Assembly: GCA_035084275.1 (NCBI GenBank)
Contig: CM068756.1
Span: 14,942,001-15,006,000, forward strand
Source: Hydrolagus colliei
Lineage: Eukaryota
DNA length: 64,000 nucleotides
Direction of reading: 5' to 3'
Positions 87-48,116 of this stretch are shown piece after piece; the first letter of the stretch is position 1, and each line of letters opens with the position of its first letter. The translations under genes and the position numbers were made by a program. Below the pieces are notes generated by a model. It did no database searches. It was not told the DNA's origin and saw only the letters and a program-made list of their open reading frames with translations.

Positions 87-203
87 ATCTGGAACAAAAC
101 AGAAAATAATAATCAGGTATATGCCAGTTTGGAGTTTTCTGGCCTGGAGAAAGTAGGAAAACCTAAAAGAAGTGAACCGAATACAATGTATGCTACAGTG
201 CAG
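87..203 (+). CDS. Gene I0 cytoplasmic Tyr-motif exon a (IWNKTENNNQVYASLEFSGLEKVGKPKRSEPNTMYATVQ); 5' part of the gene lies upstream of the window
   Basis: ttttatag acceptor, CAG|gtgag donor, 117 nt, phase 0-0. Carries YASL and the ITSM-type TMYATV. Paralogous to 18063-18179 and 42305-42421. Confidence 0.85.
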
Positions 204-589
204 GTGAGAAAGTGGAAAGGATATTGTAGACCATTTAAAGGAAACATTGATTCTCATTTAGTTCTCACAATCTCATTCACTTGTTACCTGTGAGATGATT
301 ATCAGCACAAAATAATTGGAGGTTCCCTACAATGTAAAGCAATATGTAAAGTAGTCCCATGGACGATATCCAACCATCTAACCCCCGCACACAAACATAT
401 TAATGGATGTTGAGTTCAATAACAAGTGTCTCCATATCAATCATGCATTGAACCAGGTACATTTATAATGCTTATGGTACTAATGAATTGAGATATGGGA
501 AAAACCAAGGTGGAAATTCATATCGGTATTTTCTATGGTGTTTCTGGGTTTTTTACATTGAGCGTGAACTGACTAAATTACCAATACTT

Positions 590-965
590 GTCTTCATTCA
601 ATTCAAGATTCTGGTCCTCACCATTTTAGCTGTCGATGGGCTTGCAACACCCTATATCTGTGACCTCCTCTCTCCCTACCAACCTATCCGCTTCTTCTGC
701 TCAGTGGGCTCCAGCCTGCTCCATGTCCCATAATACCTCCGCCCCACCATCAGTGGCTGAGCCTAATGCCACTATATCTTGCCTGCTTCCTAGTCTGCTT
801 CAATTCCTGCCTGAAAACCTTCCTCATTGATGGTGCCAATAGTCAGTGCTCCCACTCCCCTCCACCCTCCCCAATCCTGACCCCATCTTGCGTCTGATAC
901 GCTGAATGTCCAGCACCTTGGGATGTCCTCCCAACATGAATGGTGCTATCCAAATGTAATTTTAT
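590..965 (+). mobile_element. Old L2 3' fragment (paralog about 18580-18980)
   Basis: FKILVLT...LSPYQP remnant and an L2-type tail ending directly at the exon b acceptor. Confidence 0.7.
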
Positions 966-981
966 TGTTATTGTTTTACAG

Positions 982-1119
982 ACCAAGCAAGGGGCACATG
1001 GTAATAACCTAACATATGCTGCTCTTGATTTTTCTGAGTCCAAGACAACACAAAAACATAACCGCAGTGACACAAATGTAGTGTATGCCGAGATACAGAT
1101 GAGAAAGAACAGCCGATGA
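982..1119 (+). CDS. Gene I0 ITIM exon b (TKQGAHGNNLTYAALDFSESKTTQKHNRSDTNVVYAEIQMRKNSR*), terminal by read-through
   Basis: ttttacag acceptor; canonical ITIMs LTYAAL and VVYAEI. The donor GT of the paralog (19109) is AT here (1099-1100), so the frame runs to TGA at 1117-1119. Confidence 0.85.
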   Translation, partial: TKQGAHGNNLTYAALDFSESKTTQKHNRSDTNVVYAEIQMRKNSR

Positions 1120-1952
1120 CTCTCCGTCATAGCAAACTGTGCTTATTAACACCAATGCTGCGCTGTGTTGCTAGTGTATCACCATTATTCCCAGATGAAA
1201 CTGAAGATCAAGAATTAAAGAATCATGCCAGAGGGAAACACACCATTCTTCCCAATGCAAGAACATTAGATTAAGGAGAAGGAGTTATTAAATTTAATAA
1301 GCCATTTAATAAGATCATGGCTGATCTTCTAATCTAACTCCACCAGCCCATTTTATCCCCATATCCCCATATCCTTCAATCCCTTTATCCAAAGAAATCC
1401 ATCAATTTAATTCTTCAATATGTTCAAGGACTGAGTATCTACTGCCTTTTAGAGTAAACAATTCCACAAATTAACTACCCTCTAAGTAAAGATGTTTTTC
1501 CTCAACATTGTGCAAACAGGCTAACCCTAATCTAAGACTGTGACCCCCTAGTTATAGTTTCTCCAACCAAGGGAAATAGTCTCCCACTGTCTACTCTACA
1601 AGCTGCACTAATTTTTTTCCACAACTATTATCCCAATCTAAAATTTCCATTGGCTCTTCAATCCATTCAATTTTTCCCACTTTAAGTATGTGTCCTTTTC
1701 TTTGTTTACAGAGAATTCAACCTTATTGCCCATCCTTTACGTATAGAATTTGTGATGATCTTAAATATGTGCCCTCCAATAACTGGCAAGCTGTGTTTTG
1801 CTACAAACATCCAAGCAAATCTAGTTCTCCTGCTTGCTTCCCAACTACATGCCTTGACCTTTACTGCGAACTATATCTAGAAAAATATCAGAAGTTTATC
1901 AAAGTTGGACAAAAGGATAAGCTAACAATGTTTCCAAACATTGACTTTACAG

Positions 1953-2093
1953 GCCAAGCAAGAGGCAGCCGCTAACAAGCTGACATACGCTGCCTTCCAA
2001 TTTTCGGCTTCCAAGAAATCAGGAAAACCTACAGACAGTGACAAGAATACAGAGTACGCGAAAGTACAGGTGAACACCAGAAAGGAGCAATAG
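1953..2093 (+). CDS. Gene I0 terminal Tyr-motif exon c (AKQEAAANKLTYAAFQFSASKKSGKPTDSDKNTEYAKVQVNTRKEQ*), probably orphaned
   Basis: tttacag acceptor; LTYAAF and ITSM TEYAKV; TAG at 2091-2093. Paralog of 20000-20140. Confidence 0.75.
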   Translation, partial: AKQEAAANKLTYAAFQFSASKKSGKPTDSDKNTEYAKVQVNTRKEQ

Positions 2094-2169
2094 AATCTAT
2101 CACAACTGAACACACAATGTTATGATAATAGATGCAGATGCTCATTAGAGTGCAGTAAACCCATAATAA

Positions 2170-2486
2170 TAAAACTAATCATGATAACTCTTGCATTTGA
2201 TATAGCGCTGTACATGTCTTCTAGATACCTCAAAGTGCCTCACATAAAATAATGTAAAGTAAATTGACTATCTATTTGTTGGCAAAACACAGCACCCAAT
2301 TGCACACTGCAGTGTGCCACAAACAGCCGTGGATTAAAGTGACCAAATTATTATTGGATTTTTTGGGTGGCATTATTATTAGGTGTGTGGATAAAGGAAA
2401 TTTACACCAGGTTTCACCCTGCCTGGAATCGAACTGAGGTCTCTCGCTTGTAAGGTGAGCGCTCCAACCACTCTAGACAAGACTCC
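2170..2486 (-). mobile_element. tRNA-derived SINE (dominant family of this window; paralog about 20240-20540)
   Basis: A/B-box head, conserved body GTGGGACACTGCTGTGTGCAATTGGCTGCC, AAAGCGCTATATCAAATGCAAGGA(TTA)n tail. Confidence 0.8.
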
Positions 2487-3989
2487 AATCTATCTCTCTT
2501 TCTCTCCGTCACTCTCTCTATCTGTCTCTTGATTTCTCTCAGTCTTTCTCTCTTTCTCCCTCAGATTCTCCCTCAGTCTCTCACTCCCTCTTCTGTGAAG
2601 CGCTTTGAGACATCTAGAAAACATGAAAAAGACTATATCAAATGCAAGGATTATTAGCAGTACAAGTAGTAGTAGAACAATGTTAATCATTCCATTCAAT
2701 GTGGAGTAATGCCCAAGTTGTAAATTGACTCCATATGTTAAACCCACTATAGTTATTTGTGATCTTTAAATATTTTATGTGGTTCCTTTGAGAAAAGTTG
2801 TCCGGGTTACATTTATTTCCAGTTTAAAGTGCTGATCAGTGATAACTTATATTTATCTGATAATATCTTTGGACCCAACTCATGAATTCTTTAATAAAGA
2901 AATAATTATGTATACCACAAGCCTCACAAACATAAACTGTGTCAATTTAAATGGTTTTGGCGTCATACCGTATTGTGTATAATCAGCTTTTTCAAAGTCA
3001 TACCATATCATGTTTTAAGAAATTTTCCAATAAAGATCAATTCTGAAGCATAACTTGTGTGTTGTCTCATTTCATCACGTTGTTTGTTTTCAATATTCAC
3101 CAAATGTGATATGGTTTCTCTTGAAATCTGCTTAATAAAATATTTAATTAGTTAAAAACAGCTCAATTCATACTCCAGTGGTGAAAAGGTTGAGGTGTCG
3201 GTGTTCTTCTCGTGAATTATCTGCGAAAATTGCCTAACAGGAAGTAATTGGGTTTTCTTACCAGTTGTTTTTTGTGGTTGATGATACTGACACTAAATGA
3301 TTCCTGTTTAAGTCTCACACTCACTCTCTGCTGAATACAGAGCGTGGTTTTATGAACTTTTATCCACCATAGGCAGTTTTGCAATATACTGTAGGAGCTA
3401 GGCATCTGTAACTAACAGTTCTGAATTCTACCCATTGGCAGTCTTTAAAACCTAGCTTTTTTTACAATGTAAGATTACTATCAATTAAAATGTGTAGACA
3501 TTAAAATATGTAGACACAACCAGTTTTAATTTTACAGGTGTTACTGGAAACTGGCTTGCAAGACTGTGTTGAAGAATAATGAATGCTAAAACCAATCTAA
3601 CTCGAATTTCAAGCCTGACATTTCCGAATCAATGCAATAAGAGATGGGGACTGACAGTTGAAGAATGAACTAATCGTGCACATCTTCTTGTTCTCTTTTG
3701 TTTGCTGTGTGTGCACTCTACTCAACTCTACATTAGATTGATTTTGAACTAAATTCATTTCTGTTAAGTTCTCTAACACCATTCTTTAACATATAGATTC
3801 TGCAGGACAAGTTTTCTATCACAGTAACTGTGGCATGCAAGATACAAATATTCCTTCTTGTAATACTTCCTGCGTTAGGGACACATTTAGGACACCATGT
3901 TCCTGGCTGACATTCTGGTATGTTGCTGTACTTTCAAAGGTATCGTCATTTGCATGAGAATCTAGGAAGTCTCCCTAAACATCTCCCTA

Positions 3990-4625
3990 AACTTCTCACT
4001 CCTCACAGCTGTACCCCCATCCCCACCCACTGCCCCCCACCCATCTCTGCCCCCTTAGCTCCAGCTTCCTTGTTCCCCCAAGTCCTCCACTGAGTCTGAC
4101 CTCCTCCATGTCCCCGAATCCTCTGCTCCACACTGGCGGCCATGCCTTCAGCCACTATTGCCCCGAGGCTCTGGAATTCCCTTCCTCACTACCTTCGCCT
4201 CGTACCCTTTTCTCAGCTTCAGGTCCCAGCTGAAGACTTTTCTCTTTGACCGCGCCTTTGGTCACCCCTTTGGTCACCTTCCTACCCCTGCATCTGGCTC
4301 GGTCCCGGGATCCGCTATTGTGAAGCGCTCTGAGACACCGGCCGGCGTGGAGGGCACTATATAAATTAAAGTTGTTGTTGTTATTGTTGTTGACCTCCGC
4401 TCCACCATCAGCGGCCATGCTTTCAGGCACTACACCCTGAAAATCTAGAACTCCCACCCTCAACCCCTTTGTCTCAACTCCTCCTTTCCCATCTTCAGGT
4501 TGTACCTGAAAACCATTCTCTTTGACCGTGCTAATGTTCCCCTTCTCTTCTCCCTCACACAGCTTCAGGCTCCGCCACTTCTAAGAGCTCTGAGAAGCCG
4601 CCCTGTTTCATAAATGCAAGTTGCG
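3990..4625 (+). mobile_element. Cluster of old L2 3' fragments, missing from the second duplicate copy
   Basis: LKTFLFDRAF remnant and (GTT)n tails; the paralogous site near 22530 lacks this block. Confidence 0.65.
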
Positions 4626-5888
4626 GTTTTTGTTGACGTGTTCTAACCCAAAGATCCTAATTGGACTGGGAAAAAAAATAGCAAAGGAATGGTGTGTGAC
4701 TCTAACACACACCAGGAACAGAAAAGGGTAAGGTAACACAAGGGAGGATGTTGAAAGTTGAAGGATATTGGTGTGGTTTGAAGTTGTTAAAGTAGATATA
4801 ATTTTGTGCTAAAAATTGAAGGACCAACATTAAAAAAGTGATTACTTCTAGGCAGAGGTATATGCTACGTGTGCAAATGTACATCCGCCCCTGTGTGATA
4901 TTGCATCTTAAATAATCTGTTGTGGGTGCTGCACAGCTTCTAACCAGATATTCAGCATTCAGGGTTTCTTCTAAACATACAAAACCACTTGATCAATCTT
5001 ACTTTTTCACATCTCATACCCTTCTGCTCACACAGCTTTCATTGAACACAATGAACCAATCATATAACACGCTACTTTTACAGACCATGTAAGGAACTTT
5101 TGAAGATTTATTGACATGCCCTGACACAGAGAGAGCAAGTTTGTAAGATAGATGAAAAGCTAAACAGAAACAGAATTATTCCAAGCATCAAGAGGCAGCA
5201 GAATTAGCATAACAGATAGAAACGCTTTTCTGCACACAAAAGTCAAACTGAAATAATCATATGATAGTAACGTGTACCAAATAAATATTCTGAAACATTT
5301 TCTTGCAATATCCTTCATTTCATCACCTATTTATTCACACACTATATTGAACACACTACCCTGTGTTGGTTCACAGCTCTTTAGGGTCAATTGCCCATAC
5401 GTTTCATGGGTTAGCCCAACAATAACAACAACAACAACATTACATTTATAGAGCACCTTTCACAGGCTAAAAATATGCTATTTTCCACAGATCAAACCAT
5501 TTAATTATTATCGGCTAAGTGTTCATCAGGAAATCTTCCGCACACGGATTGGCACAGAACCCAATTCTTTCTCTTGCAAACATCATCACACAAACATTTT
5601 CCATCATTAACTATGGGTTGGGTCACTGCCAAGAAAACCCTTGGGTCCTGATGTCAAATGCAGCGCCCCCCAGTGTCACCTCAACTAGTACCAGGCAGAT
5701 GAGCACAAGCGTTGGCTGGTATTGAGGATGGAAACTTCTCCTGTGTTATATATTTCCGACTGTAAATTCACCACCTGAGGAGACATTGCAATATGTTTTT
5801 CATTTTTTAAAAAGGTTTTACAATGAATATTGTTTTATAGAAGCCTTTACTTGAGGAGTGATTCTATAAGTAAAACATATTACTGGCT

Positions 5889-6477
5889 ATAATAACAACT
5901 TTTCATGTCTTCTAAACGTCTCAAAGCACTTCACAGAATATACTGTGAAGTGAATAGACTGTATACACATGGGCAATATACGGTAGTCAATTGTGCAGTG
6001 TCCCACAAATAGTTGTGGAATTAAATGACCAATTTCTTCTTTTTGAGGGATTATTCTTCGGAATGGGTTTTTAATGAAACTTGTCCAAGGTTTCGCCCTG
6101 CTTGGAATTGAACCCAGGTCTCTCACTTGTAAGGCGAGTGCTGTAACCACTGAGCTACAGGACACTACAATTTTGAAGAGTCCTGTGCCTCAGTGGTTAG
6201 AGAACTCATCCTACAAGCAAGCGACCTGGATTTGTTCCAGGCAGGGTGAATCCTTGAGCTAGTCTCCTTTTTGCACAGGCCTGATAATAATCCCTCGAGA
6301 AAAAACAATAATAATTTGGTCATTTCAATCGACTGTTTGTGGGACACTACTGTGTGCAACAATCGCGGTTCACACATGTATACACAGTCAATTCACTTTA
6401 CAGTACATTCTGTGTAGCACTTTAAGACGTCTAGAATATGTGAAAATTGTTATATCAAATGCAAGGATTATTATTAG
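5889..6477. mobile_element. Head-to-head pair of SINEs (minus 5889-6165, plus 6177-6477); paralog about 23741-24329
   Basis: Two near full-length copies in divergent orientation about 12 bp apart. Confidence 0.85.
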
Positions 6478-7859
6478 ATGCAGCACTGTCAATTTATTTT
6501 AATGTTGACAAATGCAGTCATACTTAATTCTCAACCAAATGATAAAGCTCTTAGACATACAGCAGGAACTTAAAACTGAACCATAATGCCTAACACTTAT
6601 CTTACAACCACATAAACTATTCTCATCATTGGCTTAAAGTTTAGTTCACGGAAACTCATTTTCTCTCAAGCACAGTACATTTGTGATCACTTCAAGTCTT
6701 TTATCTCATATGTTGTGTTCACATTGTCTACGAGGTTGGCTGAAATACGTGTTTGGAAACCACAATATGTTGCAGCAGAGACAAGTGTGCTGCTAACTGA
6801 GCTGAGTTTCCACTAAAGCCACAATGTAATTATTCATTTATCACAATGTGATCACAATGATCTCCCCCTCTATTTATTTCCACCCTGCCCTGAACTCTTC
6901 ACCAAACAGTGGTCACAGTAGTCTCAGCGTTTTGGGACATTCTCCCAACTTGAAAGGCTCTCTATCAATGTAATTTTTTTGTTGTTGTTATTGTCACAAT
7001 ATCTTACGTGCCCACCATCACAGATTTATTGATTATGATTATTCTGTGTGTGCTTCTCTCATCAAAACAATTTTGACCTCACATCTAGGTATTTCTATGA
7101 GTGAACCACATGGATTTTTGTTTATTTCACTTCATTAAAGGAACTACAGAGGATGGCAATAATATACATGATAAAAAATAAATGATCGTATTTATCTGGG
7201 AATGTTTAGCCTTTATTTTCTCCAGCAGCAACGTAAGATACTTAACGCTCAGCTGGACAGGCAACAGAACATTGGGTACAACTTTCACTAGAAGGATAGC
7301 ACTCCCATTACAGGATGTTCTAAAATAAAATTGGTCAATTCAATCCAAGACAGTTTGTGAGATACTGCGGTGTGCAATTGGCTGCCATTTCACCCACAAA
7401 TATACAGTCAATTCACTTTACAGTTTATTCTGTGAAGTGATTTGAGACATCTAGAAGACATGAACAGTGCTACTTCAAATGCTAGGACTATTATGATTAT
7501 TATTATTAAAAGTGGCCATGTTAAGATTGAATCCCCAATGTTCTGTGCTCATAGCGTTATGGAATTAAACAACAATAATTGCTAAAGCTTGACATCTGTA
7601 TCGGTCTTGAATGGTAATTATATGTTCTACACTATCCTATGTTGCTGTGATTCACTCCATGGAAGCAGACTGGCATAACTCCTGATCATGATCCCAAGAG
7701 ACAAGAGTTTAATTGCTGAGGGTATCAAGATAATGGAGAGGAATTTTTGTACTAAATACGATGGAAGTAGAAACGGGAGAACCAGAAGGAAGCAGCTAGG
7801 GTTTGAATGTTTAACATTGATTATTGAGTCACCAAAGATGGAGTGTTCATAACCAAAAG

Positions 7860-8400
7860 AGAGCAAGAAACTTCCCTGTATCCAAGCCATGATCCTCTCT
7901 ACCATCCCTCACCTCCGCAACATTGCCGGACTCTGCCACTAACTCACCTCTCAGTTCGCTGAAACTCTGATTCATCCCTTCATCACATCCAGGCTTGACT
8001 ATGCCAATGCTCTCCTCGTCGACCTTTCCAACTCCACCCTCTGTAGATTCCAGGTCATCCAGAACTCTGCGGACCATGTCCTTTACCACTCCAAATTCCA
8101 TGATGCCATCTTTCCCATCCTCACCCAACTCTATTGTTTCCCTATCACCCAGAGGATTCAAATCAAGATCCTGGTCCTCATTTTCAAAGCCCTCCATGGC
8201 CTAGCACTGCCCTAACTCTGGGACACCCAACCCACTACCAACCTGACTACTCCCTCTGCTTAGGAGTGCCAGCCTGCTCTATGTCCACCGACCCACCTGC
8301 CCCACCATCAGTGAGTGAGCCTTTTACATCTGGAATTCCATCCCGCAGTCCCGTTGGAGTCCATTCTCCCGAGGTGAAAGACACAATATAAATATAATCT
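7860..8400 (+). mobile_element. Old L2 RT C-terminal fragment
   Basis: [10 protein letters not shown]-like and IKILVLIFKALHGL remnants. Confidence 0.7.
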
Positions 8401-8424
8401 TGTTATTGTTGATTTTATAAATTT

Positions 8425-8615
8425 CAGGCAGCATCTATGGAGAAAGCAAGTGAGACAATGATTTAGGTTCACGACCATTCGTCAGATGGACGAAGGGTCA
8501 TTCACCCAAAGCGTTGCCTCACTATCCTTACTCCAGAGATGCTACCTGACCTGCTGAGGGCTCCCAGCGATTTCTGTTTTTGATTCAGATTTCCAGCATC
8601 TGTAGTATTTTGCAT
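8425..8615. mobile_element. Penelope-like inverted terminal repeat remnant (paralog 27362-27550; single arm 50410-50540)
   Basis: Palindrome CAGGCAGCATCTATGGAG...GACC(A/C)TTCGTC / GACGAAGGGTC...CTCCAGAGATGCT(A/G)CCTG. The family assignment is from recalled chondrichthyan repeats. Confidence 0.55.
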
Positions 8616-8619
8616 TTTT

Positions 8620-9375
8620 GATCTAGTTTTCATGTTCGGTTCTGAAGCCAAGGAGGGCACGGGGGATGGGGCAGTGGATTGTCTCCTTAATGGATTTCCA
8701 AACAGGTGGAACGATTGGCTGAAAGCTCTATCAGCTCCCGGGATGGGGCAGATCGATTATTGGGACATGGGATACTTGTATAGTTGTAGAGTGGATGGAG
8801 TAGAAGGACAGTGAGGCCATTTGATCGTGAGGTTAAACATCTCCAGTTGGATTTGCTGGTCCAGGAGAAGGGCTGCACAGAACAGTGGGGTCTCCAGCTT
8901 GTGTATGGAGACGCTGGGAGTCCCCATGAGTTGGGAAGTTGATCGATCAAACCTATATGGAATGACCCCATCAGGGTCCTCGCAGCCCTAGTGAGCTGTA
9001 GGTATTGATTGAGGTGATGTTGGGAAGGTGCCGGAAAGCTAAGGGATTGACAGCCAAGAAGGACATTTGATTTTTGGGTGCCAGTCGTTGTCTGACATAT
9101 GCAGGAACCGATCTCCATGCTCAAACCTATCACACCCGTCCTCACTCGAATTCGTTGGCTTCCCATCACAGAGAGGAACCTGGTTCTCACCTTCCACTTC
9201 AAATGTAATGATTATTTTATTTCATGCTGGACTACAATGCTGGGGTAGTCCAGGAGTTTAATTGAAGTGGGAGCGATGTAAACCGCAATCTTTGCTTCAG
9301 AGATCAGTGTGATATCAAGCCAGCTGAACTTACATTGAAACCACAAAGCCTGTGTATATTTATTACACTATTATT
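8620..9375 (-). mobile_element. Degenerate LINE (L2/CR1) RT fragment; copies near 27570-28320 and 37480-38290
   Basis: ALLLD(LS)-type RT motif remnant; three colinear copies. Confidence 0.55.
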
Positions 9376-11111: not shown

Positions 11112-11137
11112 CAGCTGCGCCCACAGGGTCAGGAAGT
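11112..11137 (+). promoter_or_regulatory. Candidate leukocyte-type proximal promoter of I1 (E-box CAGCTG, ETS CAGGAAGT); also present upstream of A2
   Basis: Motifs about 90-120 nt upstream of the leader ATG. They are short, so support is weak. Confidence 0.3.
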
Positions 11138-11229
11138 CAAACATCACCCTCACATCTCATCTCAATCAACTCCAACCCCTGGTCACAGACCAGCCACAGC
11201 TTTAGGGTTAGTCTCAGTCACAGATCAGG

Positions 11230-21058: not shown

Positions 21059-21064
21059 AATAAA
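21059..21064 (+). terminator. Candidate poly(A) signal of I1
   Basis: AATAAA about 920 nt after the stop; the same site exists in the I0 copy near 3029. Confidence 0.3.
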
Positions 21065-33949: not shown

Positions 33950-34370
33950 ATTACAGAATCATCTAATTTTATGGCACAAAAGGAAGCCATTCGACCGATC
34001 TAGTCTGTGCCGGCTCTTTGAAAAGAGCAACTCCATCCCACTGCCCCGCTTTCTCCCCATAAACTAACAGACCTGTTCTCCCTAAATAAATATCTAATTC
34101 TCTTTTAAAAGCTGTTATCGAATCGGCCTCCATCACCTTTTCAGGCAATGCATTCAAGATTCGAACAACTCGCTAAGTGAAAACATTTCTCCTCAGCTCC
34201 CCTCTGCTTCGTTTTCAAACTATTTCAAATCTGTGATCATCCACCAGTGGAAACAGTTTTTCCTTATTCACCCTGTTAATCCCCTCATCATTTTATAAAC
34301 CTCCATTAGGTCTCCTATCTGTTCTAAAGAGAATAAACCTAGCCTATCTAGCCTTTCCTCATAAGAAATT
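33950..34370 (-). mobile_element. CR1 LINE 3' fragment
   Basis: ORF 33969..34157 NALPEKVMEADSITAFKRELD, typical CR1 ORF2 end. Confidence 0.8.
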
Positions 34371-38601: not shown

Positions 38602-39396
38602 TGTTGCGATTCATGAGTTTGTGCGTCTTGTTAAGTTGATGCCTCATGTTAATTCGGCATCAAGGTGTGGACTGTTGCGATTTGTAAAATCAATCCAATC
38701 ATTGTAGGGCATGTATCCAGCCTAATATGGGCATTGCTGGTCATGTGATATTTAGGCGCCAAACAGTGTGTACTTGCCAAAGTAAGCATGGTCAATGGGT
38801 ACAAGGCCAGAGTGAGGTCTTGCAATTGGCTGAGTAACTGTTCTGGGGACACGTGACCGCAAGAGCCTTGACCTTTTTAAAAGCGTCGAGACAAAGGAAT
38901 AAGCGGAGCGGAGACAGAGGAGAAGGACCTGATGGAAGACACTGTAACTGACAGTAGCCAGGCCGCTCTCGAGAAGGAGAAACAACTGATGGAAGATACT
39001 GTAACCGACAGTAGGTTGCAGAGGATAAAGAATCAACCTCTTGCTGGACAGTATACACCACCAAACAGAGCAGAGTATTGGGGTGGACAGTATACACCAC
39101 CAAACAGAGGAGAGTATTGGGGTGGACAGTATACACCACTAAACAGAGGAGAGTATTGGGGTGGACACTATACACCACCAAACAGAGCAGAGTATTGGGG
39201 TGGACACTATACACCACCAAACAGAGGAGAGTATTGGGTTGCAGAGGATAAAGAATCAATCTCTTGCTGGACAGTATACACCATTAAGGGATCCCTGTGT
39301 TTAGTGTCAAGCCCTGACGGGTTAGCCTGAATAAACAACCTGGTTTGATGAGATACGACTCTAGTGCATTTCACTCATTGGTCGAAATCTCTAACA
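38602..39396 (+). mobile_element. Solo LTR, 795 bp, related to the one at 35262
   Basis: TGTT...CTCTAACA; 4-bp TSD ACAT (38598-38601, 39397-39400); shares the GGAGAAGGACCTGATGGAAGA...GCCAGGCCGCTCTCGAGAA block; AATAAA near 39330. Confidence 0.85.
39046..39240 (+). repeat. 39-bp minisatellite, five copies, inside the solo LTR
   Basis: Unit GGACAGTATACACCACCAAACAGAG(C/G)AGAGTATTGGGGT starting at 39046, 39085, 39124, 39163 and 39202. Confidence 0.95.
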
Positions 39397-42300
39397 ACAT
39401 CTAATACATTCTTTCCAAGAACGCGAGTATGAAAGTGAATTTCCATCCCTCAACCTCTTAATTACGAGTTAACATTATGTCCCCCTCTATTTCATCTCAC
39501 GACCCATCTTCAGCACCGCTTTATTAAACAATTTTAAAATGATTTGCTCTCAGGCATTTTACAAAGATGCTTTCATTCAAAACCCAGTCCCACGATTTCT
39601 CTGGAGCCGCAGCTGAGACTGGAAGATGATCCTGTGGATGATGATCTCCAGGATATGTTGTTTCACCCCATAATAGCTCAGCATATTTTCATCCGATCTT
39701 AATTTGGCTGCATTTGGCAATTTTTTATACATGCCTCCATCTGCAGCTGTATCCCCATAAAACAACTAAGATAGCTGCCGCAGATCTACTTTTCTGATAA
39801 TAAATACATTCACCCACAAAATATAGAGTCATAAAAACACTTGGCAACACAGTTTCCTGCGAGGCGCTTTGAGACGTCTGCCTGGTGTAATAAACCGCTA
39901 TGTCAAATGCAAGGATTCTTATTTATTATTATTGTTGTCGAGAGGTTTCGTTGTCCGACATGAAAGGGGCTATACAAATGTAATTCTGTTGTTGTTGTTG
40001 TCTACAGTTGCCTCTCTGTTAAATAATAAACTTTCTCTCTCCCTTACTATTCAGTAGGAAAAAAATCAAATACCTTATTTTAAACGGGTCAAACACAACC
40101 TGATAGAGAAGCAGGAAACAAGTTCCATGAAACATCTCGGTTTCCATTTGTTTTATATATTGTTCTTCAATTTTTTTTAAAATGATCCTAATTTGTGCTG
40201 AAACACATTATTCTTTCTGATGAATTGTGTAATTATTGAAACAGTAAACCACTGGATCACTAGTGTCTAATTCCATTTCTCATCTCACAGTTTCCAAGCC
40301 AACCATCCCACAAATCAAATTGTTGGGTTTACTCTAAGATCACTGTGCCAAAATTGGATGCCGCGATCGCCCCCGAAATACACAATCACAACATTTTACA
40401 CTGCATCATGTGAAGCGTTACGAGAGGCTTTGACCATGCGATAACATTAGCTGGAGTGCTCTGAGACGCCGTCCGGCCTGGAGGGCGCTATATAAATCGA
40501 AGTTGTTGTTGTTGTTGTTATATCAAATACACACTTCATCATATCATTCCTATGATGTCGGCTACAGTAAGAAATAATGAGCTTCCTGAAACATTACCCA
40601 TCACCGGGTCTGCAGTGGGGGGTGCTTTTCTTGGTGCTGTTGGTGTACATGCGAACGCGCTTTCAGTTAAAGAAAATGAAAGGTAAGGTTCAAATTATTT
40701 TGTTTCGGTTAATGGTGAAAGCTTGATTTTAGTACATGTAAGTGTGAAAGTGCTATATCTCTCTGGCAATGCACAGATACAGATTTTCATAGAAAAATAG
40801 AAACTCTGGATGTCCAATTGTTTTTACTCTTATCATTCTTCACTGGAGATTCAGTAAAATTTCAGTTATATTTCTTTCATTTTAGGGGTGCTCAGGAAAC
40901 AGAATGATTGTGACCACTGTACCCAGCAGGTAATATACATCCCAGGCAGTGTTTACTACCCAAAGGGTGATTGATAACATTGAAAAAGATTTTGTTGTTT
41001 ATAACTGGATGAGAATGCTTTTACAATATTTCTTACCTGACTGACAGTTTCACTGTGTCACTCAAAATATGTTCACACCAATATGAGTCATCTGGTCTTG
41101 AGAAAAGACCATATATTTGGGTAAAAGTTGAAAGTTGCAGTTTGTGATTTTCAGGTACTGCCAGGAGGAGATGCTGAGATGGTGATTTATATGACACTGG
41201 ATCTGAAAAGTTCCAATAATCGTTCAAGACCCAAACATCAGGAAGATAGCACAGTTTATGCCAAGGTACATTTGAAAAACATAACATCGACATTTACAAT
41301 CACGCTATTCTAACCGTAAGAGATAGATTGAAGCTCATGTGTTCTGTATTGGACACCTCACTTCAGGAAAGATGTTAGAACATACAGAGAAGAATTGTGA
41401 AATATGGTTTATAGAAACCGTATACAGAAATAAATTATTCCCATTGTTCAGGGAGTCAGCAAGTAGAGGACAAGTATAAGGTGGTCACATGGAGTGAAAG
41501 AAATGTATCTTTTTAAACACAAGGAGTTGTTTTGGTACAATATGAGATGCAGAGTCTGTTGCAAGTTTCAAGAGAGAAGTAGAAAGGTACATGAAAAATA
41601 TGCTTCACCGGGCCTCTACTCTGTTTATACAACCTCGACAAGTTATCCCAAATATTGTTTATTTGTGAGTGGGCCTTGACAGTGAATCCAGAAGGAAGTA
41701 GATAGGTACTTGAAAAATATGCTAACCCTAAACCTAGTCCAATTATTCAGGAACACCATAACTTATTCCCCCACCAAAGAAAATTATGTGCGAGCCTAGA
41801 TAGTTAGTGCATTAATCTAGGCTGCTTGATAGACATCAGAGCTGAATGGAAACTGTCTCACGCATCTCTTTCCAAAAGACAATTGGCGAATCGCACACTA
41901 TCCGAGAGTCTCTCCTGCTTCCCAGACAAGTACGTTGAGGCCATTTGCTGCATCCATGGACAACTCTGGGAGGGAGGTGGGTACCTCTGGGTTCTTATGG
42001 ATGGGTTTGGAACTGAACAATTGTCTTTGCAATTCAGCTGCTGCAGGAGAAGCAATTGAGTATTATTTTTTACCAAAAGACTGAATTAATCATTCGATAA
42101 CAACGTTTAAAAGCAAGGTAGACATTTATTTGGGGAGGACGGGTTTGCGAGGTTATGGGGAGAGAGCTGGGGAGTGGGATAAAATTGTTGTTTTTAAAGA
42201 GCCAGCACAGACTCGATGGGCTGAATGGCCTCCTTTTGTACCATAAGATTCTATGATTCTAAGATTCTATGATAATTAAATTCCAATTACTTGATTTTTT

Positions 42301-43140
42301 ATAGATCAACCAAAACACAGAAGACAATAAGCAGGTAAATGCTGCTTTGGAGTTTTCTGGCCTGGAGAAAGTAGGAAAACCTAAGAGAAGTGATCCAAAT
42401 ACAGTGTATGCCTTGGTGCAGGTGAGAAATCATGAAGGACATTGGAGCCCATTTACAGGGAATCAAAATCAATGATGTGTTGTATTAATTGGTGCAAGAG
42501 CTTATTATTAGATCAAAGGGATGGTAGTTTCCCTACTATACAAAATAATGTGTAAAGTAATGCCATGTTACTTGTCTATCACTGAGCCCAGTGCAGCTAA
42601 ACATCACTGTCAAGTGCATACCTACATTCATTGGCACTGCTTTCCAATTTGAAAACTACCAATGGCCACCAGAATGATTTCCATCTCCCCTCTCCCTGTG
42701 TGCACATACTCACATCAATAGATATAATTTATAAACCAATACTTAGTATAATGGTTGTATTCTCTGTGATAGAGATTGAGTTCTCCCACACCAAATGTTG
42801 TGCTGCTAGTGCACAACCATTATTTCCAGAGGACACTGCAGTTTAACAATCATAGAATCCTGCCAGAGAAGGGAAATAGGCCATTCTTTCCAAACCAAGC
42901 TGCACTCATGTCTTTTCCACACTAGTTAACCCAATCTAAAATTTCCATTGGCTCCTCAATCCATTGAGCTCTTCCTTCATTACAAATTGGTCATTTTCAA
43001 ACCACGACTGTTTGTGGGACACTGCTGTGTGCAATTGGCTGCCGCATTTCACCCACAGATACACAGTAATTCACTTTACAGTATATTCTGTGAAGAGCTT
43101 TGAAACATCGATAAGATGTGAAAAGAGCTATATCAAACAT

Positions 43141-43465
43141 GGAGCTCCTGTGGCTCAGTGGCTAGAGCACTAGCCTTAAAGGTGTGAGACCTATGTTCGA
43201 ATCCAGGCACATCAGAGTGAAACCTTAGGCAAGTTTCCTCTACTCTACATGCCAAATAATAATCCATTAAAAAAAACACAATTTAAAAAAATTGGTCATT
43301 TCAATCCATGGCTGTTTGCGGGACACTGTTGTGCGCAATTGTCTGCTGCATTTCACCTACAAGTATACAGTCATTTCCCTATACAATGTATTCTATGAAG
43401 TGCTTGAGACATCATTAAGATGTGAAAAGCGCTATATCAAATGCAAGGATTATTTATTATTATTG
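43141..43465 (+). mobile_element. Full-length SINE abutting the last I3 exon
   Basis: A box TGGCTCAGTGG, B box GTTCGAATCC, family body and tail. Confidence 0.85.
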
Positions 43466-43899
43466 GTTTTACAGGCCAAGCAAGGGGCAGCTGCTGACAA
43501 ACTGACATGCTGTTTTAGAATTTTCTGCCTCCAAGACAACAAGAAAACCTAAACACAGTGACAAGAATACAGAGTATGCCGAGATACAGGTGAAAAAAAA
43601 CCAGAGTAGCAATAGAAGCCATCACAAACCATGGAACAGGATCCAAATAATCTTACAGTGATAGGTGCAGAAGCTGATTAGAGTTCGGTACAATGTTAGC
43701 CATTTCAATGTGGAAAGTAATCCTGGTTAAATTTATTTCCGGATTAAATACTCATCAGTGATGTTTTGTATGTATCTGATCATGTTGTTAGACCTAACTG
43801 ATGAATTTTTAATTCAGAAATAGTCAATTATACTGCAATAAAGAAACATGTACCATGTTTTGTGAACTTTTCCATAAAGACCAATTCCAAATCATAAAA

Positions 43900-44445
43900 T
43901 GTGTGATTCTATGGTTCCCCTCCATCACAATCCATAAAATCCAACTCATTCAAAACTCTGCCGCCTGCATTCTCACCTGCACCAAACTTCACTCCCCCAT
44001 TACCCTAGACCTTGCCAGACTTCACGGGCTCCCTATCCCAGAGATGATCGATATCAAGATTCTCACCCTTGTCTTCAAAGCCATCATTCCTCTGCACCCC
44101 CCTACCTCTCTGTCCTCCTCTCTCCTCAAACCAGCTTCCGTTGCCTGAGCTCCACTGGATCTGGCTTCCTTCATGTCCCCCGAATCCTCCACTCCACCCT
44201 CGGCGGCCATGCTTTCAGCCTCTACGCCCCGAGGTTCTGGAATTCCCTTCCTCACTCCCTTCGCCTCGCCCCTTCTCTTCCCAGTTTCAGATCCAAGCTA
44301 AAGACCTTCTCTTCGACCGTGCATTTGGTCACCTTTCTGCCCCTGCCCCTGGCTCGGTCCCGGGATCCATTATTGTGAAGCGCTCTGAGACACCGTCCGG
44401 CATGGATGGTGCTATATAAATCAAAGTTGTTGTTATTGTTGTTGA
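43900..44445 (+). mobile_element. L2 3' fragment
   Basis: IQLIQNSAACIL...LARLHGLPI remnant and (GTT)n tail. Confidence 0.75.
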
Positions 44446-45574
44446 TTTCTCCTTTAATCATATTGTTTTTTCAATATTCACCAAATGTGGTATGCGTTAG
44501 CTTGAAATCTGGTTAACAGAATGTCAAATTAGCTCAATTCATCTTCATCGGTGAAAAAAGGCTTCTAACATTCTGTAATTAATGTGTTAAATAATATCTC
44601 AAATTATATTAGCAATATTTGAAACATGTAATGAATTACATATGATGGAAGTTGGTTGTGACTCATTTTACAGTAAAAAAAGACTGTTTATAAACAACAA
44701 ATGGTTTTCAGTCATTAACAGTAATTTTCTTATCGAAAAACCTCAACAATAACAAAATTACATTTATATAGTACCTTTCATGGTTGGTCTGCAGCTGGAG
44801 AGGGAGCTGTGTTACATTTGTTTTTGCAAAGGAACAATCTTGTAAAAAGACAATAGGAGAATGGCTATCTAATGAACTGGATAAAGAGGGGTTGATTTAA
44901 GAAAGAGGAAGGAGAAAGGAACAAATTGGAACTTGGAGTAGTGAACTCCAAGTTCACTAATTCCAGCTTCAGCAGAAAGGGAAGATCAAGACTGAGTGGA
45001 GGAACTCTGGACATACATTAGTGCTTGGATATTGAACTGGGAACTGCACAATAATACCTGGATTAGTGGAACTTAAAGAAAGATCCGCCCAATAAACATG
45101 TAGAAACATAAGACGCTGTTCTGACTTTACCTGAAGTTGTGTCGCTGGAGGTACTGTTAAAGTTAAATATAATTCAGTTTCTCTCGGAGCTGAAGATACT
45201 TCAGACTGAACTGCCAATGTCTCTGAAGCCTGTATGCATTTACAATTCCTCAGTAGGCCGCGTCTCTCAATTCCATGAATGACCAGTGAGAAATCCCACC
45301 TGGGGAACAACAGATTGACACAATTTATGTAGCATTTCAATGACCCCAATTTGGCAAATTGTTGAATTCAGTCTAAACTTTGAAGTTGTTATCTGTAGCT
45401 CTTAAAATAATGTATACAAAACGGGGGCTTCGAAATCAAAGCTGCATTAAAGAATTTGTTGCATTCTGGATGTTCAATAATGCTACATTAGTGTAGTAGT
45501 GTAGTAGATCCAGGCCAACCTACACGCCCCTGAAAAGTATCCTTAGAGGAGGGTTAATGAGGATTCCTTAGAAC

Positions 45575-46364
45575 AAGGGTCCGGCGATATATCGATATAT
45601 CACTAAAACCCGATATAATTTTCATATCGATACGCCGATAAAGGCACTTCAAAAATATCGATATATCGACTTTTCGATATATCGAGGTGAAAATCGGAAT
45701 ACCCAGAATGCTCATCTCTATACACAATGCACAGACCGAGGTGCAAAACTGCCATATTGTATTCATAGTCCTCGAATACAATATACAAGTATGAAAGGGG
45801 TGGGGGTGGGGGTGTGTGGGGAGGGGGGCGAGAGACGGCTGGGGGGGGAGGGGGCGAGAGACGGCTGGGGGGGGAGGGGGAGAGATACGGCTGGGGGGTG
45901 GGGGGGTGGGGGGGAGGGGGAGAGAGACGGCTGGGGCGGGGAGGAAGAGAGAGATGGCGGGGGGTGGGGGGGGAGGGGGAGAGAGACGGCTGGGTGGGGG
46001 TGGGGGGGGAGAGAGATGGTGGGGGGCCGGTGGGAGAGAGGGACGGTGGCGGGGGGGGGTGGGGGGCGAGACGGGGTGGATGTGATAATATAGATACATA
46101 GAGATGGGGGGGATGTGAGAGAGGAGAGAGACACAGAGACACAGACAGAAAAACACAGAGATAGAGAGAGTGAGTGTGAGAGACACAGAGAGAGAAAGAT
46201 ATTTACCTCCTGAGGAGATAGGCCCCGAATGCGCGCACACCCCGAATGCGCACACCTCGCGCATGCGCAGTACGAAAAACCCGAAAATATCGATATTTCG
46301 GTATATCTCGATATGAGCCCATCGATATATCTAAATCAGAAAATTTCTATATCGACGGACCCTA
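45575..46364. mobile_element. Non-autonomous hAT-type DNA transposon (MITE), 790 bp
   Basis: Perfect 8-bp TSD CTTAGAAC (45567-45574, 46365-46372); 17-bp TIRs with 15/17 match (TAGGGTCCGTCGATATA); many ATCGATAT subterminal repeats; G-rich core. Confidence 0.88.
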
Positions 46365-47463
46365 CTTAGAACTTAACTGGTTCAAAAGTGAGATGTTTGG
46401 GAATTGAATGTTGGACCAGAGCCGGGCAGGTCTGAGGATTCCTGGGTCGTGTTGATGATAGCACAGCCAGTCTGACTCATCGGCAAGTCTTAGAAAGGCA
46501 GACCAGTCACTGGGAGGAAGGAATCCTTCCACTGAACTTCTGTTAACCCTGTAAACCAAAGGTGGTCCTAGCAACGGGAGTCAGACAGTGTGATTAATGG
46601 CAAGCTATAAGGTTTTAGCTGGTTAGACTCCAGCAGTTACCTGAACATACACTGTTGGATGCTCAATTCTTGGCTCTTGCCGATTTGCGCCTAAATTCCA
46701 GAAATAGTTAATTGGGGTGTGTCTTTACCGCCTGTGTTGGATGTTCTTAAGCATGGTGTCTGGCACATGCGGAAACCCATCACCATGATAGAGAGAACAC
46801 ACACAAACTGATTTCCACCTACACATGAAAATTAGAGAGATAGATTAATAAAAATAATCCTTACATTTTTGATACAGTGCTCTCCCGTCTAGATTCTTGG
46901 AATGGAATACACATCTGTAGAGAGATGCATCCTGCTTACCGAATTCTGGAAAGTATTAGGTACTGAGCCAAGACTTGGGAACCTCACCCAGTGCATTGGG
47001 TTACCTTCTGGAGTTTCACCAGATAACATTTATGGCTTGCCACTGATATCTCTGTCTGGCAATCTTCCCACTGCTTGTCCAGCGAGGACCACCCTACCCA
47101 TGAGGACTTTGCCTTGCAGGGTTAACAGGACCCAATGCACCCAATGATAGGTCTGATCTCCCAAGTCTTGCTGATGAACAAGGTTGCCTGTGCCTTTATT
47201 AGCGGTGCTCTATAACACTGAGGACCTGCCTGGTTCAGGAACCAAACTAGTGACACCATCACAGGGGCTTCCTCGATTCTGAATTCCGCTGCCAAGCATG
47301 TCAACTTGCAGTTAGCTGAGCTCCAAGAAAACCCCCAGTTACATCCCCTTCCCCCAAGGAGGATAAGGGGGAGGGAATGGTTACAGCACAAATTAATAAA
47401 GTACATTTAATTACAAAGTTTTAAATTTATTCTCTGTCACCAATTCCTCCTCTTGTTATGCAG

Positions 47464-48116
47464 CTATCCCGATACATCAAAAAATACTCTACAAAGTGTT
47501 GGACAGGAACCCGACCACCTCTCTGACTCTAGTTTGTGAAACGGATGAGTTTTACCCAGAAGATATCACTATCACTTGCTATAAAGATGATAAGAACATT
47601 TTGGCTGTGAATACAATCAAACAGCTTGGGAGAGGTGGGAGAGATATAAAGCTTCAAGCTCCGTGGAAGAGACAAAGCCTATCCACAGAGGGACTGTTTA
47701 CACCTGTCTGGTATCTCACCTGAGCCTTGGGACTCTAATCATTGCTATGTACGTTGTTTCTGGTTCTTACCAAGGAAAACTTGTGTTTTTCTTCTAAATC
47801 TTGTTGCTGATGATGTGTTTTCATTGTTGTTATGCACTCCAACACCTCCACCTTGCCCACAATATTAACTGAACAGAATTAACCATCATATCAAGTTCCT
47901 GAGCTATTGAACGCCATGTGCGCTGTGCCATTATCAGTCCTCCAAGAGAAGGATGTTTTATTTCTTGGCAAACACTATATTTGTTATATATTGTTGTATT
48001 TATTTTGCAGCTGCTGATCAGGGGATACAGAGGGCTATGTTAACACTGTGTTTATTGTTGATGCTGTTGTTGACAGTTATCATTGTGGACTAGCATAAAA
48101 CCAACACTATTTGAAG
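47464..48116 (+). pseudogene. Gene A4: activating-type relic (frameshifted C1 exon plus Arg-TM exon)
   Basis: C1 about 47464-47774: LTLVCETDEFYPEDITITCYK...frameshift...YKASSSVEETKPIHRGTVYTCLVSHLSL. TM exon 48011-48116: (A)ADQGIQRAMLTLCLLLMLLLTVIIVD*HKTNTI* then AG|gtaag. No leader or V exon found. Confidence 0.8.

Follow-up and report, generated by a model that had tools for sequence, protein, structure and literature searches.

In the mammalian paired Ig receptor systems LILRB/LILRA, KIR-L/KIR-S and PIR-B/PIR-A, the genes are clustered, turn over fast and commonly become pseudogenes, and inhibitory members (with ITIMs) neighbour activating members (with an Arg or Lys in the transmembrane segment, TM, and coupled to an adaptor) that have homogenised ectodomains. 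Hagfish APAR and Xenopus XMIV are germline-joined VJ receptors and, together with NITR and PRARP, occur as activating/inhibitory pairs. As described, most of PRARP, NKp30, NITR, CD79, CD8, APAR and XMIV are set apart from the genes studied here by having no C1 domain or other second domains. The TM residue of SIRPbeta1 is a Lys. SIRPalpha recruits SHP-1/2 through an ITIM tail, and SIRPbeta has a basic TM residue, a very short tail and DAP12 as partner (PMC12975943). PRARP, NKp30, NITR, CD79 and CD8 are other germline-joined VJ receptors (PMC11599192). UrIg and UrIg2 are elasmobranch non-rearranging VJ-C1-C2-C3 genes (PMC12227049, PMC10751288); UrIg2 has four Ig domains, of which the amino-terminal ones homodimerise and C2-C3 resembles IgG Fc (PMC12227049).

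The window analysed here is a stretch of 64,000 nucleotides of Hydrolagus colliei DNA. Between positions 87 and 48093 it holds five gene units in the order I0, I1, A2, I3 and A4, all on the + strand and located where the original prediction had placed them (Table 1). Two units (I1 and A2) appear intact, and three (I0, I3 and A4) are decayed. We consider it probable that the region represents one end of a tandem cluster of Ig-superfamily receptor genes, non-rearranging and of VJ-C1 type, which contains an inhibitory/activating pair with opposing signals. In this reading, each gene encodes a leader followed by single V and C1 domains, the V with its J strand built in, and then has either of two 3' ends. 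In the inhibitory version, an uncharged TM is followed by a short linker (exon c0) and by as many as four exon repeats of 39 amino acids; each repeat has an ITIM-like xxYAxL and, 23 residues on, an ITIM/ITSM xxYAxV/I. In the activating version, a single exon encodes a TM that has an Arg near its outer end and, exactly 17 residues later, an Asp at its inner end, together with a tail 0-8 residues long. Exon c0, the decayed c1 of I1, the AT donor of the middle I0 exon and the YYS of A2 had been overlooked before.

Table 1. Features of the five units (positions in the window; units 1 and 2 are I1 and A2)
Unit	Feature	Position	Strand	Remarks
I0	Tail exon c2 (…NNQVYASLEFSGLEKVGKPKRSEPNTMYATVQ), phase 0-0	87-203	+	AG/GT flanks; DNA 88% identical to I1 tail block
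I0	Tail exon c3 (LTYAAL … VVYAEIQ)	982-1098	+	Donor AT in place of GT
I0	Last tail exon c4 (LTYAAF … TEYAKVQVNTRKEQ, stop)	1953-2093	+	
I1	Leader (MLASVVFQCLSLTVWIISK), phase-1 donor	11230-11287	+	19 residues same as A2; C. milii P0007 leader near-identical
I1	V exon, germline-joined VJ (…YYCSVVLKGNKTINGTGSHLTVC)	11387-11692	+	Pfam V-set 1-108/109; single exon between leader intron and C1 intron
I1	C1-set exon, phase 1-1	13241-13573	+	Pfam C1-set E 1.9e-12; AG/GT flanks
I1	Deletion scar within C1-TM intron	14400-14463	+	DNA alignment to unit 2
I1	TM exon, uncharged (GNQLLYSLLITVSAVGLAFLVLLMYIGKRSMSKKMK), phase-1 donor	16020-16127	+	Layout as C. milii P0001, P0014
I1	Exon c0 (GVQRNQNDLSQHSQQ), 44 nt	16450-16493	+	tblastn with P0001 c0 segment E 8e-5; flanks ttttag/gtaata
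I1	Tail exon c1, decayed (AMQAGDDEMVTYISLNLKTSNKLSTPKY, stop)	16897-16984	+	In-frame TAG; donor lost relative to I3 copy; intact in P0001
I1	Tail exon c2 (QVYATL … TMYATVQ)	18063-18179	+	
I1	Tail exon c3 (LTYAAV … VVYAEIQ)	18992-19108	+	
I1	Last exon c4 (LTYAAF … TEYAKVQVNNRKEQ, stop)	20000-20140	+	
A2	Leader exon	30173-30230	+	19 residues as in I1
A2	V exon (VJ)	30330-30635	+	72% aa identity to I1 V
A2	C1-set exon	32204-32536	+	94% aa identity to I1 C1
A2	Activating-type TM exon (VFNVHGYLGIFRFAFSALVILLMAAILVDYFKMNPV, stop; ends …GIFRFAFSALVILLMAAILVDYFKMNPV, stop)	33824-33933	+	R-x16-D core as in chimaera/shark proteins
I3	Upstream region	37520-38304	+	Homologous to unit 1 8668-9387
I3	C1 3' relic (…TQPVQNGTVYTCQVPHLSLQTPAIGNYTVQFPPQ)	38292-38395	+	
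I3	TM exon, uncharged type, frameshifted	~40569-40683	+	Collinear with unit 1
I3	Exon c0 (GVLRKQNDCDHCTQQ)	40886-40929	+	
I3	Tail exon c1, intact (VIYMTL … TVYAK)	41155-41265	+	
I3	Tail exon c2 (QVNAAL … TVYALVQ)	42305-42421	+	First Tyr to Asn
I3	c4-like tail exon	43474-43604	+	2-nt deletion, frameshift in first motif; TEYAEIQ retained
A4	C1 exon relic	47464-47762	+	Frameshift near 47600-47625; conserved Trp to Cys; poor donor
A4	Activating-type TM exon (AADQGIQRAMLTLCLLLMLLLTVIIVD, stop; ends …IQRAMLTLCLLLMLLLTVIIVD, stop)	48011-48093	+	Weak DNA homology to A2 exon end

The named family that comes closest in architecture and tail logic is SIRP, which occurs in mammals and birds. Both share an N-terminal V with a J-like strand followed by a C1-set domain, and a paired inhibitory/activating design; the SIRPalpha tail carries two [I/L]TYADL … [T/S]EYAS[I/V]Q modules spaced about as in the modules of the cluster. 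The cluster differs in its TM, with Arg plus a conserved inner Asp, and in its tail of up to four exon repeats. Membership in SIRP was rejected on domain number (one C1 here, two in SIRP). The resemblance to SIRP that had been proposed holds in part: human SIRPalpha is the top solved-structure match for I1 as a single-sequence query (E 5e-20), but in the family-profile query an IgA1 heavy chain, UrIg2 and a chain deposited as CT3 all outscore it among solved structures. Like UrIg, the cluster comes from cartilaginous fish and has a VJ exon that does not rearrange and precedes C1, and UrIg2 is among the best solved-structure matches; unlike UrIg, the cluster genes encode two domains and a TM, exist in both an inhibitory and an activating form, and are members of a large multigene family. 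Clustered paired genes with turnover are also the mark of LILR, KIR and PIR, but the ectodomains there are C2/I-type and here VJ-C1, and beyond the Ig fold we know of no relationship in sequence. PRARP, NKp30, NITR, CD79, CD8, APAR and XMIV likewise have a non-rearranging V with a J-like GxG strand; to our knowledge, none has been reported from chondrichthyans with the tail or TM design of the cluster.

Seven double-tyrosine tail modules, all on the + strand, were counted in the window against none across 100 Markov shuffles, and two R-TM-D exons against a mean of 0.23, with patterns set post hoc in both cases. These counts lie beyond chance. Each of the two exon types also has matches among the proteins of other species. 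Judged by their sequence, both TM types are genuine exons. Pfam recognises the C1-set as well as a nearly full-length V-set domain, and the AlphaFold model of the I1 ectodomain (pLDDT 92) has V-C1 chains as its fold matches. The I1 protein begins with a leader and a V domain of the VJ type, continues with C1 and an uncharged TM, and bears six tyrosine motifs in its tail: LTYAAV, VVYAEI, LTYAAF and TEYAKV, all noted earlier, and additionally QVYATL and TMYATV. Two of the six (QVYATL and LTYAAF) are off consensus. Its frame is open for 407 amino acids across 8 exons, with AG/GT at every splice site, provided that the decayed c1 is skipped, which keeps the reading frame; c0 links the TM exon, which is in phase 1, with the tail exons, which are in phase 0, as in I3. 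Retention of c1 would lead to a stop after one ITIM (VTYISL), with an AATAAA 88 nt downstream of this stop. In A2, 268 amino acids are open across 4 exons with all splice sites canonical, and the C1 exon has an alternative in-frame donor at 32515. The Arg-bearing TM exon ends in a stop 8 codons past the TM-end Asp, which is followed by Tyr where the chimaera and shark relatives have His, and an AATAAA lies nearby at 34085. The second canonical Cys of the A2 V domain is Ser (YYS for YYC). This disulphide Cys is invariant in 13/13 other aligned members, and A2 may thus be en route to a pseudogene.

The paired-receptor logic proposed originally was borne out by the comparison of I1 and A2, in which a near-identical promoter, leader, V and C1 precede an uncharged TM with an ITIM/ITSM array in one case versus an Arg TM with an 8-residue tail in the other. 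Their DNA is 95% identical over about 10 kb and drops to 85%, then 79%, past C1. Promoter, leader and intron DNA is 96-100% identical, and the segment 11133-11282, which covers most of the leader exon, is 100% identical to A2. The V exons differ at 35/306 nt (11%), against 103/2993 nt in the flanks (Fisher p = 1e-8), i.e. three times the neutral flank rate, with dN of 0.141 and dS of 0.072. At the 27 V positions that differ, most compared paralogues carry the I1 residue more often than the A2 residue, which makes the A2 V appear the more derived. In the ectodomain tree I1 and A2 are sisters (99*), and elsewhere activating and inhibitory forms are intermingled.

The remaining units are relics. 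I0 is a tail only, in which read-through of c3 would hit a stop after 6 codons. The upstream DNA of I3 directly abuts the 3' end of C1, meaning that about 4 kb with leader, V and most of C1 was lost, and exon c3 was not found in I3. No V exon was found upstream of the A4 C1 exon, and the A4 TM has an R-D spacing of 18 rather than 16. I3 and A4 are dead genes. With three of the five units plainly broken, this could be a dead or dying edge of a functional family, where no unit, I1 and A2 included, still gives a working receptor and no paired system would operate from this locus. The stop-bearing I1 tail exon with its lost donor, the AT donor in I0, and the missing cysteine and more derived V of A2 would all fit. 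We nevertheless find this unlikely, as the open frames of I1 and A2 are complete with canonical splice sites, their 5' flank and leader have remained 96-100% identical, and the V divergence goes beyond what relaxed constraint alone yields. The relics, the 4-kb deletion, the frameshifts and the mosaic identity show that the local turnover that had been suggested is real. The cluster has probably evolved by tandem duplication, with homogenisation of the 5' halves of neighbours, with V exons that changed in excess or were converted in patches, and with decay, which includes the death of I3 and A4 and the loss of one tail exon from I1 and of a structural cysteine from A2.

The C1-TM intron of I1 aligns with A2 on either side of the activating exon. 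Only about 320 bp (33594-33915 of unit 2, which include the acceptor and the greater part of the activating TM exon) are gone at the scar, and the final ~29 bp of this exon and the DNA downstream are still recognisable. Over 35 bp, I3 aligns collinearly with the DNA that immediately precedes the A2 TM exon, and the homology of A2 to unit 1 extends 430 bp beyond its TM exon before it stops. This could mean that both isoforms once came from a single ancestral gene through a choice between alternative 3' exons, and that I1 and A2 sub-functionalised through reciprocal exon loss. In such an ancestor, an activating TM exon, complete with a stop and poly-A site of its own, would have lain upstream of the exons for the inhibitory TM and tail. 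We see this as possible, if somewhat improbable: the same pattern would result from an unequal crossover, placed downstream of the TM exon, between an activating and an inhibitory neighbour; in the C. milii L001 gene C1 and the inhibitory TM are separated by only 770 bp, without an activating exon; and the relatives' proteins examined included no annotated pair of isoforms that combine a single ectodomain with the two different ends.

All strong homologues are chondrichthyan, the best being from Callorhinchus, in agreement with the cartilaginous-fish host recognised earlier. By sequence, this is a large multigene family throughout Chondrichthyes (sharks, rays and chimaeras), and the view of a lineage-specific system had to be abandoned, since the family and both TM types occur across all three groups. 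In a set of 124 family proteins, 54 have ITIM/ITSM tails and 10, from chimaera to sharks, have the strict activating motif R-x16-[D/N/E]-H. The A2-type TM is found with this spacing in C. milii P0008 (SRFTLSMLLILFLAIIIVDHFRKNPL, stop), and the spacing is invariant in shark P0030, P0032, P0035, P0038, P0042, P0060, P0061, P0092 and P0098. The TM-c0-c1-c2 layout matches residue for residue in C. milii P0001, P0010 and P0014 and in locus L001, and the inhibitory layout also recurs among elasmobranch proteins. The original prediction that annotation may miss the pairing is only half right. NCBI models of relatives do hold both forms, some named SIRP alpha-like and SIRP beta-1-like, but names are indeed inconsistent (tapasin-related, CD276, NCR3LG1-like, PD-L1-like, Ig lambda-like). 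No paper describing the family was found in the literature; apparently it is automatically annotated in public genomes yet undescribed.

Such names ('NCR3 ligand 1-like', 'CD276 homolog', 'PD-L1-like', 'tapasin-related protein-like') would suit ligands that resemble B7-H6 or B7, or accessory molecules of the tapasin kind, rather than signalling receptors, and a V plus C ectodomain also occurs in the B7 family and in tapasin. This seems very unlikely to us. The names derive from similarity and disagree inside one family, B7-H6, B7 and tapasin are absent by name from the best 60 solved-structure matches of both searches, and arrays of 2-8 ITIM/ITSM with a near-tailless partner bearing a conserved intramembrane Arg are hallmarks of signalling receptor pairs. 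Alternatively, A2-type proteins could be signalling-dead decoys or adhesion molecules that compete for ligand, with no adaptor role for the TM Arg, for which there is a precedent in SIRPgamma, which does not bind DAP12 and has a very short tail (PMC12975943). This is doubtful, as chimaera and sharks, lineages that diverged about 420 Myr ago (PMC3964593), have both kept the Arg at a distance of exactly 16 residues from an acidic or amide residue, a conservation that is difficult to account for unless there is an intramembrane partner.

For a pair of signalling receptors, we infer by analogy with SIRPalpha/SIRPbeta, LILRB/LILRA and KIR-L/KIR-S that I1 would signal through SHP phosphatases and A2 through an ITAM adaptor. 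Under near-identical promoters, the two would display related ectodomains. Upon engagement of I1, its tail tyrosines would be phosphorylated and would recruit the SH2 phosphatases SHP-1/SHP-2, so that the cell is damped. The Arg of A2 may pair in the membrane with an Asp of an ITAM adaptor dimer of the FcR-gamma, CD3-zeta or DAP12 type, leading to activation; no adaptor gene is present in the window. As both the inhibitory layout and the activating motif recur across the relatives, the pairing itself is pan-chondrichthyan.

The cluster of five Ig-receptor gene units, inhibitory (I) and activating (A) in the order I0, I1, A2, I3, A4, is confirmed as an observation; opposed signalling by its members is inferred by analogy. 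Six-frame motif, hydrophobicity and tblastn scans recovered every exon of the original prediction, all on the plus strand, and its interpretation as a paired family proved largely right. Neighbouring genes do carry related ectodomains: the leader residues of I1 and A2 do not differ, and identity between the two is 72% in V, 94% in C1 and 84% for the ectodomain as a whole. I1 presents the inhibitory features, an uncharged transmembrane (TM) segment and ITIM/ITSM tail motifs, and A2 the activating ones, an intramembrane Arg with a very short tail, a motif conserved across Chondrichthyes. Seven double-tyrosine modules, all on one strand, were seen versus none in 100 Markov shuffles, and two Arg-TM-Asp exons versus a shuffle mean of 0.23, the patterns of this test having been set after the fact.

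Exons of the receptor units and example copies of a dispersed repeat, positions in the window
Feature	Position	Strand	Remark
I0 tail exons	87-203, 982-1098, 1953-2093	+	gene start left of window
I1 leader	11230-11287	+	
I1 V	11387-11692	+	
I1 C1	13241-13573	+	
I1 TM	16020-16127	+	uncharged
I1 c0 (linker)	16450-16493	+	44 nt
I1 tail exon c1	16897-16984	+	between c0 and c2; in-frame TAG, donor gone
I1 tail exon c2	18063-18179	+	
I1 tail exon c3	18992-19108	+	
I1 tail exon c4	20000-20140	+	
A2 leader	30173-30230	+	
A2 V	30330-30635	+	
A2 C1	32204-32536	+	
A2 terminal TM exon	33824-33933	+	encodes ...GIFRFAFSALVILLMAAILVDYFKMNPV, then stop
SINE-like repeat, example copies	59611-59922, 12236-12481, 31186-31433, 43140-43464, 51886-52176, 56945-57124		

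The I1 model is a predicted open frame of 407 aa in eight exons with canonical AG/GT sites. Its Ig and TM exons are in phase 1 and its tail exons in phase 0-0, and the short exon c0 joins both. This linker was detected solely because Callorhinchus proteins have its 15 residues. Direct splicing from the phase-1 TM exon to the phase-0 tail exons was rejected, as the homologues show the 44-nt c0 in between. Tail exon c1 is intact in I3 and in the C. milii protein P0001. When it is skipped, the I1 frame is kept and the predicted tail contains QVYATL, TMYATV, LTYAAV, VVYAEI, LTYAAF and TEYAKV, of which two are canonical ITIMs (LTYAAV, VVYAEI), two ITSMs (TMYATV, TEYAKV) and two near-misses. When it is included, a stop is predicted after a single ITIM (VTYISL), with an AATAAA 88 nt past this stop. 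Pfam matches V-set over the entire model length, including a J-like G strand, followed by C1-set. AlphaFold folded the I1 ectodomain confidently (pLDDT 92), and a PDB fold search with this model returned only Fab light chains, a result that confirms a generic V-C1 fold and does not discriminate between families. As for the other inhibitory units, the middle tail exon of I0 has AT at its donor site. I3 descends from a complete unit that lost about 4 kb between its upstream region and the 3' end of C1, so that 37520-38304 abuts 38292; frameshifts break its TM exon and its last tail exon, a tyrosine is missing, and a c3 exon was sought in I3 and not found. The C1-TM intron of this relic holds a 39-bp tandem array (39045-39238) with copies 95-97% identical.

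On the activating side, A2 is a predicted frame of 268 aa. The Arg lies in the outer third of its TM, and the tail of 8 residues has no motifs. In its V domain, Ser replaces the second canonical Cys, which is kept in the other 13 of 13 aligned family members. A4 is older (about 71% nucleotide identity in C1): its C1 is frameshifted, its TM exon ends in VIIVD before the stop, and a search upstream of it found no V exon. An alternative in-frame C1 donor (CAAG/GTAGG, the slash marking the splice site) is common to A2 (32515), where it sits 21 nt upstream of the main donor, and the I3 relic (38395), and is not present in I1.

All strong matches in protein searches were chondrichthyan, the first ones outside this class appearing at about E 1e-15. 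The closest are Callorhinchus milii models (61-65% identity), among which P0007 has a nearly identical leader. Relatives with lower scores were found in sharks (Heterodontus, Heptranchias, Scyliorhinus, Chiloscyllium, Mustelus, Carcharodon, Rhincodon, Stegostoma, Hemiscyllium) and rays (Pristis, Mobula, Hemitrygon, Hypanus, Amblyraja, Leucoraja, Narcine). An exhaustive representative search gave 216 matches at E <= 1e-30, some of which are long multi-Ig proteins. The homologous proteins share the V-C1 layout, bar a handful of longer predictions in which domains are repeated, and within each species those family members that were looked up map to a single chromosome. Their automatic NCBI names are mixed: SIRPalpha-like, SIRPbeta1-like, NCR3LG1-like, tapasin-related-like, CD276 homolog and Ig lambda-like. 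C. milii shows this inhibitory layout of TM, c0 and repeated tail exons too, in the proteins P0001, P0010 and P0014 as well as in its cluster locus L001, and ITIM/ITSM tails are present in 54 of 124 family members. The activating exon has matches in C. milii P0008 (…SRFTLSMLLILFLAIIIVDHFRKNPL, then stop) and in shark proteins; the motif R-x16-[D/N/E]-H, with invariant spacing, occurs in 10 of the 124, and looser Arg-TM short-tail forms exist in Scyliorhinus and rays. Exact look-ups of P0001 and P0008 found no record. Since both 3' ends are found in chimaera and elasmobranchs, both are older than the split of these lineages about 420 Myr ago (PMC3964593). The system had been called lineage-specific, which is false given that both ends are pan-chondrichthyan, and true only of individual copies. 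When the two C. milii loci L001 and L002 (scaffold MU249845.1, 15.54-15.69 Mb) were compared with the window, neither was seen to overlap it, and only interspersed repeats (75-90%) and Ig exons matched. Upstream of the annotated C. milii inhibitory-type gene P0089, L002 7114-8047 (MU249845.1, about 15.68 Mb) holds part of a V exon and the relic of an activating-type TM exon, IFCFPLCVFVMLVLAVIIVDCFRIN, in which the Arg is replaced. Activating and inhibitory units thus adjoin in the C. milii cluster too.

Self-comparison of the window revealed a tandem repeat of about 19 kb. Identity is 88% between 1-3500 and 17978-21530 and 95% between 3500-13629 and 22185-32592, and goes down to 85% (13626-14400 versus 32807-33595) and 79% (14463-14897 versus 33955-34364). 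The 95% block of about 10 kb comprises intergenic DNA, promoter, leader, V and C1 of I1 and A2, and stops just past C1. The 3' parts of these two genes are older than this block; an ectodomain exchange is visible here in the window. The ectodomain tree joins I1 and A2 as sisters (99, a starred branch) and has a C. milii inhibitory gene as their next relative. Elsewhere on this tree activating and inhibitory forms are interspersed, the starred branches alone forcing at least 4 and at least 8 label changes, respectively, which indicates that ectodomains were swapped between two ancient 3' ends. Mammalian paired families likewise exchange ectodomains between activating and inhibitory ends. Within the I1/A2 block, divergence peaks in the V exon, with 35 differences in 306 nt (11.4%) versus 103 in 2993 nt (3.4%) in the flanks (11387-11692 compared with 30330-30635, 3-kb flanks, Fisher p = 1e-8); apart from it the duplicate is 96-100% identical. 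Between the two V exons dN is 0.141 and dS 0.072 (dN/dS of about 1.9). Relaxed constraint as the only cause was rejected, because it cannot surpass the neutral rate and the divergence is three-fold over that of the flanks. This leaves diversifying selection on V or a conversion patch from another paralogue. Comparison with paralogues suggests that A2 has the more derived V copy.

The C1-TM intron of I1 aligns to A2 on either side of the A2 TM exon. What the I1 intron (14400-14463) does not have is about 320 bp of A2 (33594-33915), containing the acceptor and most of the activating TM exon, the last 29 bp or so of which are still recognisable in I1. It is conceivable, and in our opinion rather unlikely, that an ancestral gene had both ends in series, that alternative use of 3' exons could switch the output of a single ectodomain from activating to inhibitory or back, and that the pairs of today arose via repeated reciprocal exon loss. 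Alternatively, the scar in the I1 intron could stem from recombination between an activating and an inhibitory gene at a point 3' of the activating exon. To our knowledge, the birth of pairs by reciprocal exon loss has not been described for mammalian families. If true, an ancestor with both ends, together with the pan-chondrichthyan R-x16-D/N-H motif, would trace a non-rearranging VJ-C1 paired system of SIRP-like type back to the base of the cartilaginous fishes.

Among named families, SIRP comes closest in architecture and logic. Its ectodomain consists of one V-set and two C1-set domains (PMC12975943), an arrangement absent here, as I1 and A2 have a single C1 exon between V and TM. In a search of solved structures with the single I1 sequence, SIRPalpha came first (5e-20), followed by UrIg2 (2e-17) and Ig light chains (about 1e-13); with a family profile, the IgA1 heavy chain, UrIg2 and a chain deposited as CT3 outrank SIRPalpha. 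Given this ranking and the missing two-C1 arrangement, we regard the family as SIRP-like in its predicted working and do not assign it to SIRP. A rearranging Ig or TCR antigen receptor, with separate V and J segments joined by RAG, was rejected: V and the J-like strand (NGTGSHLTV) form one continuous exon that ends in the splice donor to C1. UrIg and UrIg2 were rejected as well, since UrIg2 is a four-domain V-C1-C2-C3 chain (PMC12227049) and the present genes have two Ig exons followed by TM exons. The link to B7-H6 or B7 comes from automatic names only; no such chain name was among the best 60 solved-structure matches of either search. A literature search, with incomplete coverage of key immunogenetics work, found no paper on this family or on the pairing of its members.

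The window is vertebrate DNA of about 42% G+C with many SINE/LINE copies and a single assembly gap (57596-57727). A SINE-like repeat of about 300 bp has more than 20 copies in it (78-88% identity), and copies in both C. milii loci are similar (77-90%), as suits a holocephalan source without fixing the species. Two retroelement-like ORF fragments (…LHWLPI…IEFKILVLTFKALHGLAP…), 90% identical, lie on the minus strand between I1 and A2 (21528-22178 and 25836-26486; ORFs 21551-22150 and 26276-26830) and have no Pfam match; akin pieces are located near 13805-14416 and 32977-33594 and in both C. milii loci. Between I3 and A4, a low-complexity purine/pyrimidine-skewed tract (45550-46270) gives spurious long Pro-rich or Gly-rich ORFs on both strands. 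The sole non-Ig gene seen in the window is a GST gene on the minus strand (62518-63298), with a first exon MADSMLLYWGSGSPPCWRVMLALEEKQL… (Pfam GST_N families, E 2e-5) and a probable second exon …LPSFRHGDVVLNESYGVCMYLE; it may serve as a synteny marker to place the cluster.

SIRPalpha and SIRPbeta provide the paired-receptor precedent (PMC12975943). By analogy with them and other paired receptors, the phosphorylated ITIM/ITSM arrays of I1-type receptors would recruit SHP-1/SHP-2, and the outer-leaflet Arg of A2-type receptors would pair with an Asp in an ITAM adaptor dimer. For the conserved inner Asp/Asn-His, a role in fixing the TM register or in adaptor contact is possible. The near-identical promoters of I1 and A2 suggest that both genes may be co-expressed.

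Vertebrate innate immunity has made repeated use of paired inhibitory and activating receptors, which pathogens have presumably helped to shape. Interest in non-rearranging VJ-C1 genes also stems from their kinship with the antigen-receptor precursor (PMC10751288, PMC12227049). Nothing would be overturned: paired receptors of this design are familiar, and public annotation already contains relatives, with misleading names. If our reading is correct, cartilaginous fishes would possess a large SIRP-like VJ-C1 paired family with an ITIM tail built from repeated exons and a strictly spaced Arg...Asp TM motif, conserved since the chimaera-shark split. This would offer a testable system for the adaptor recruited by the TM motif and for ectodomain exchange between the two forms, and would allow testing whether the hyper-divergence of the V exon between neighbours reflects a host-pathogen arms race.
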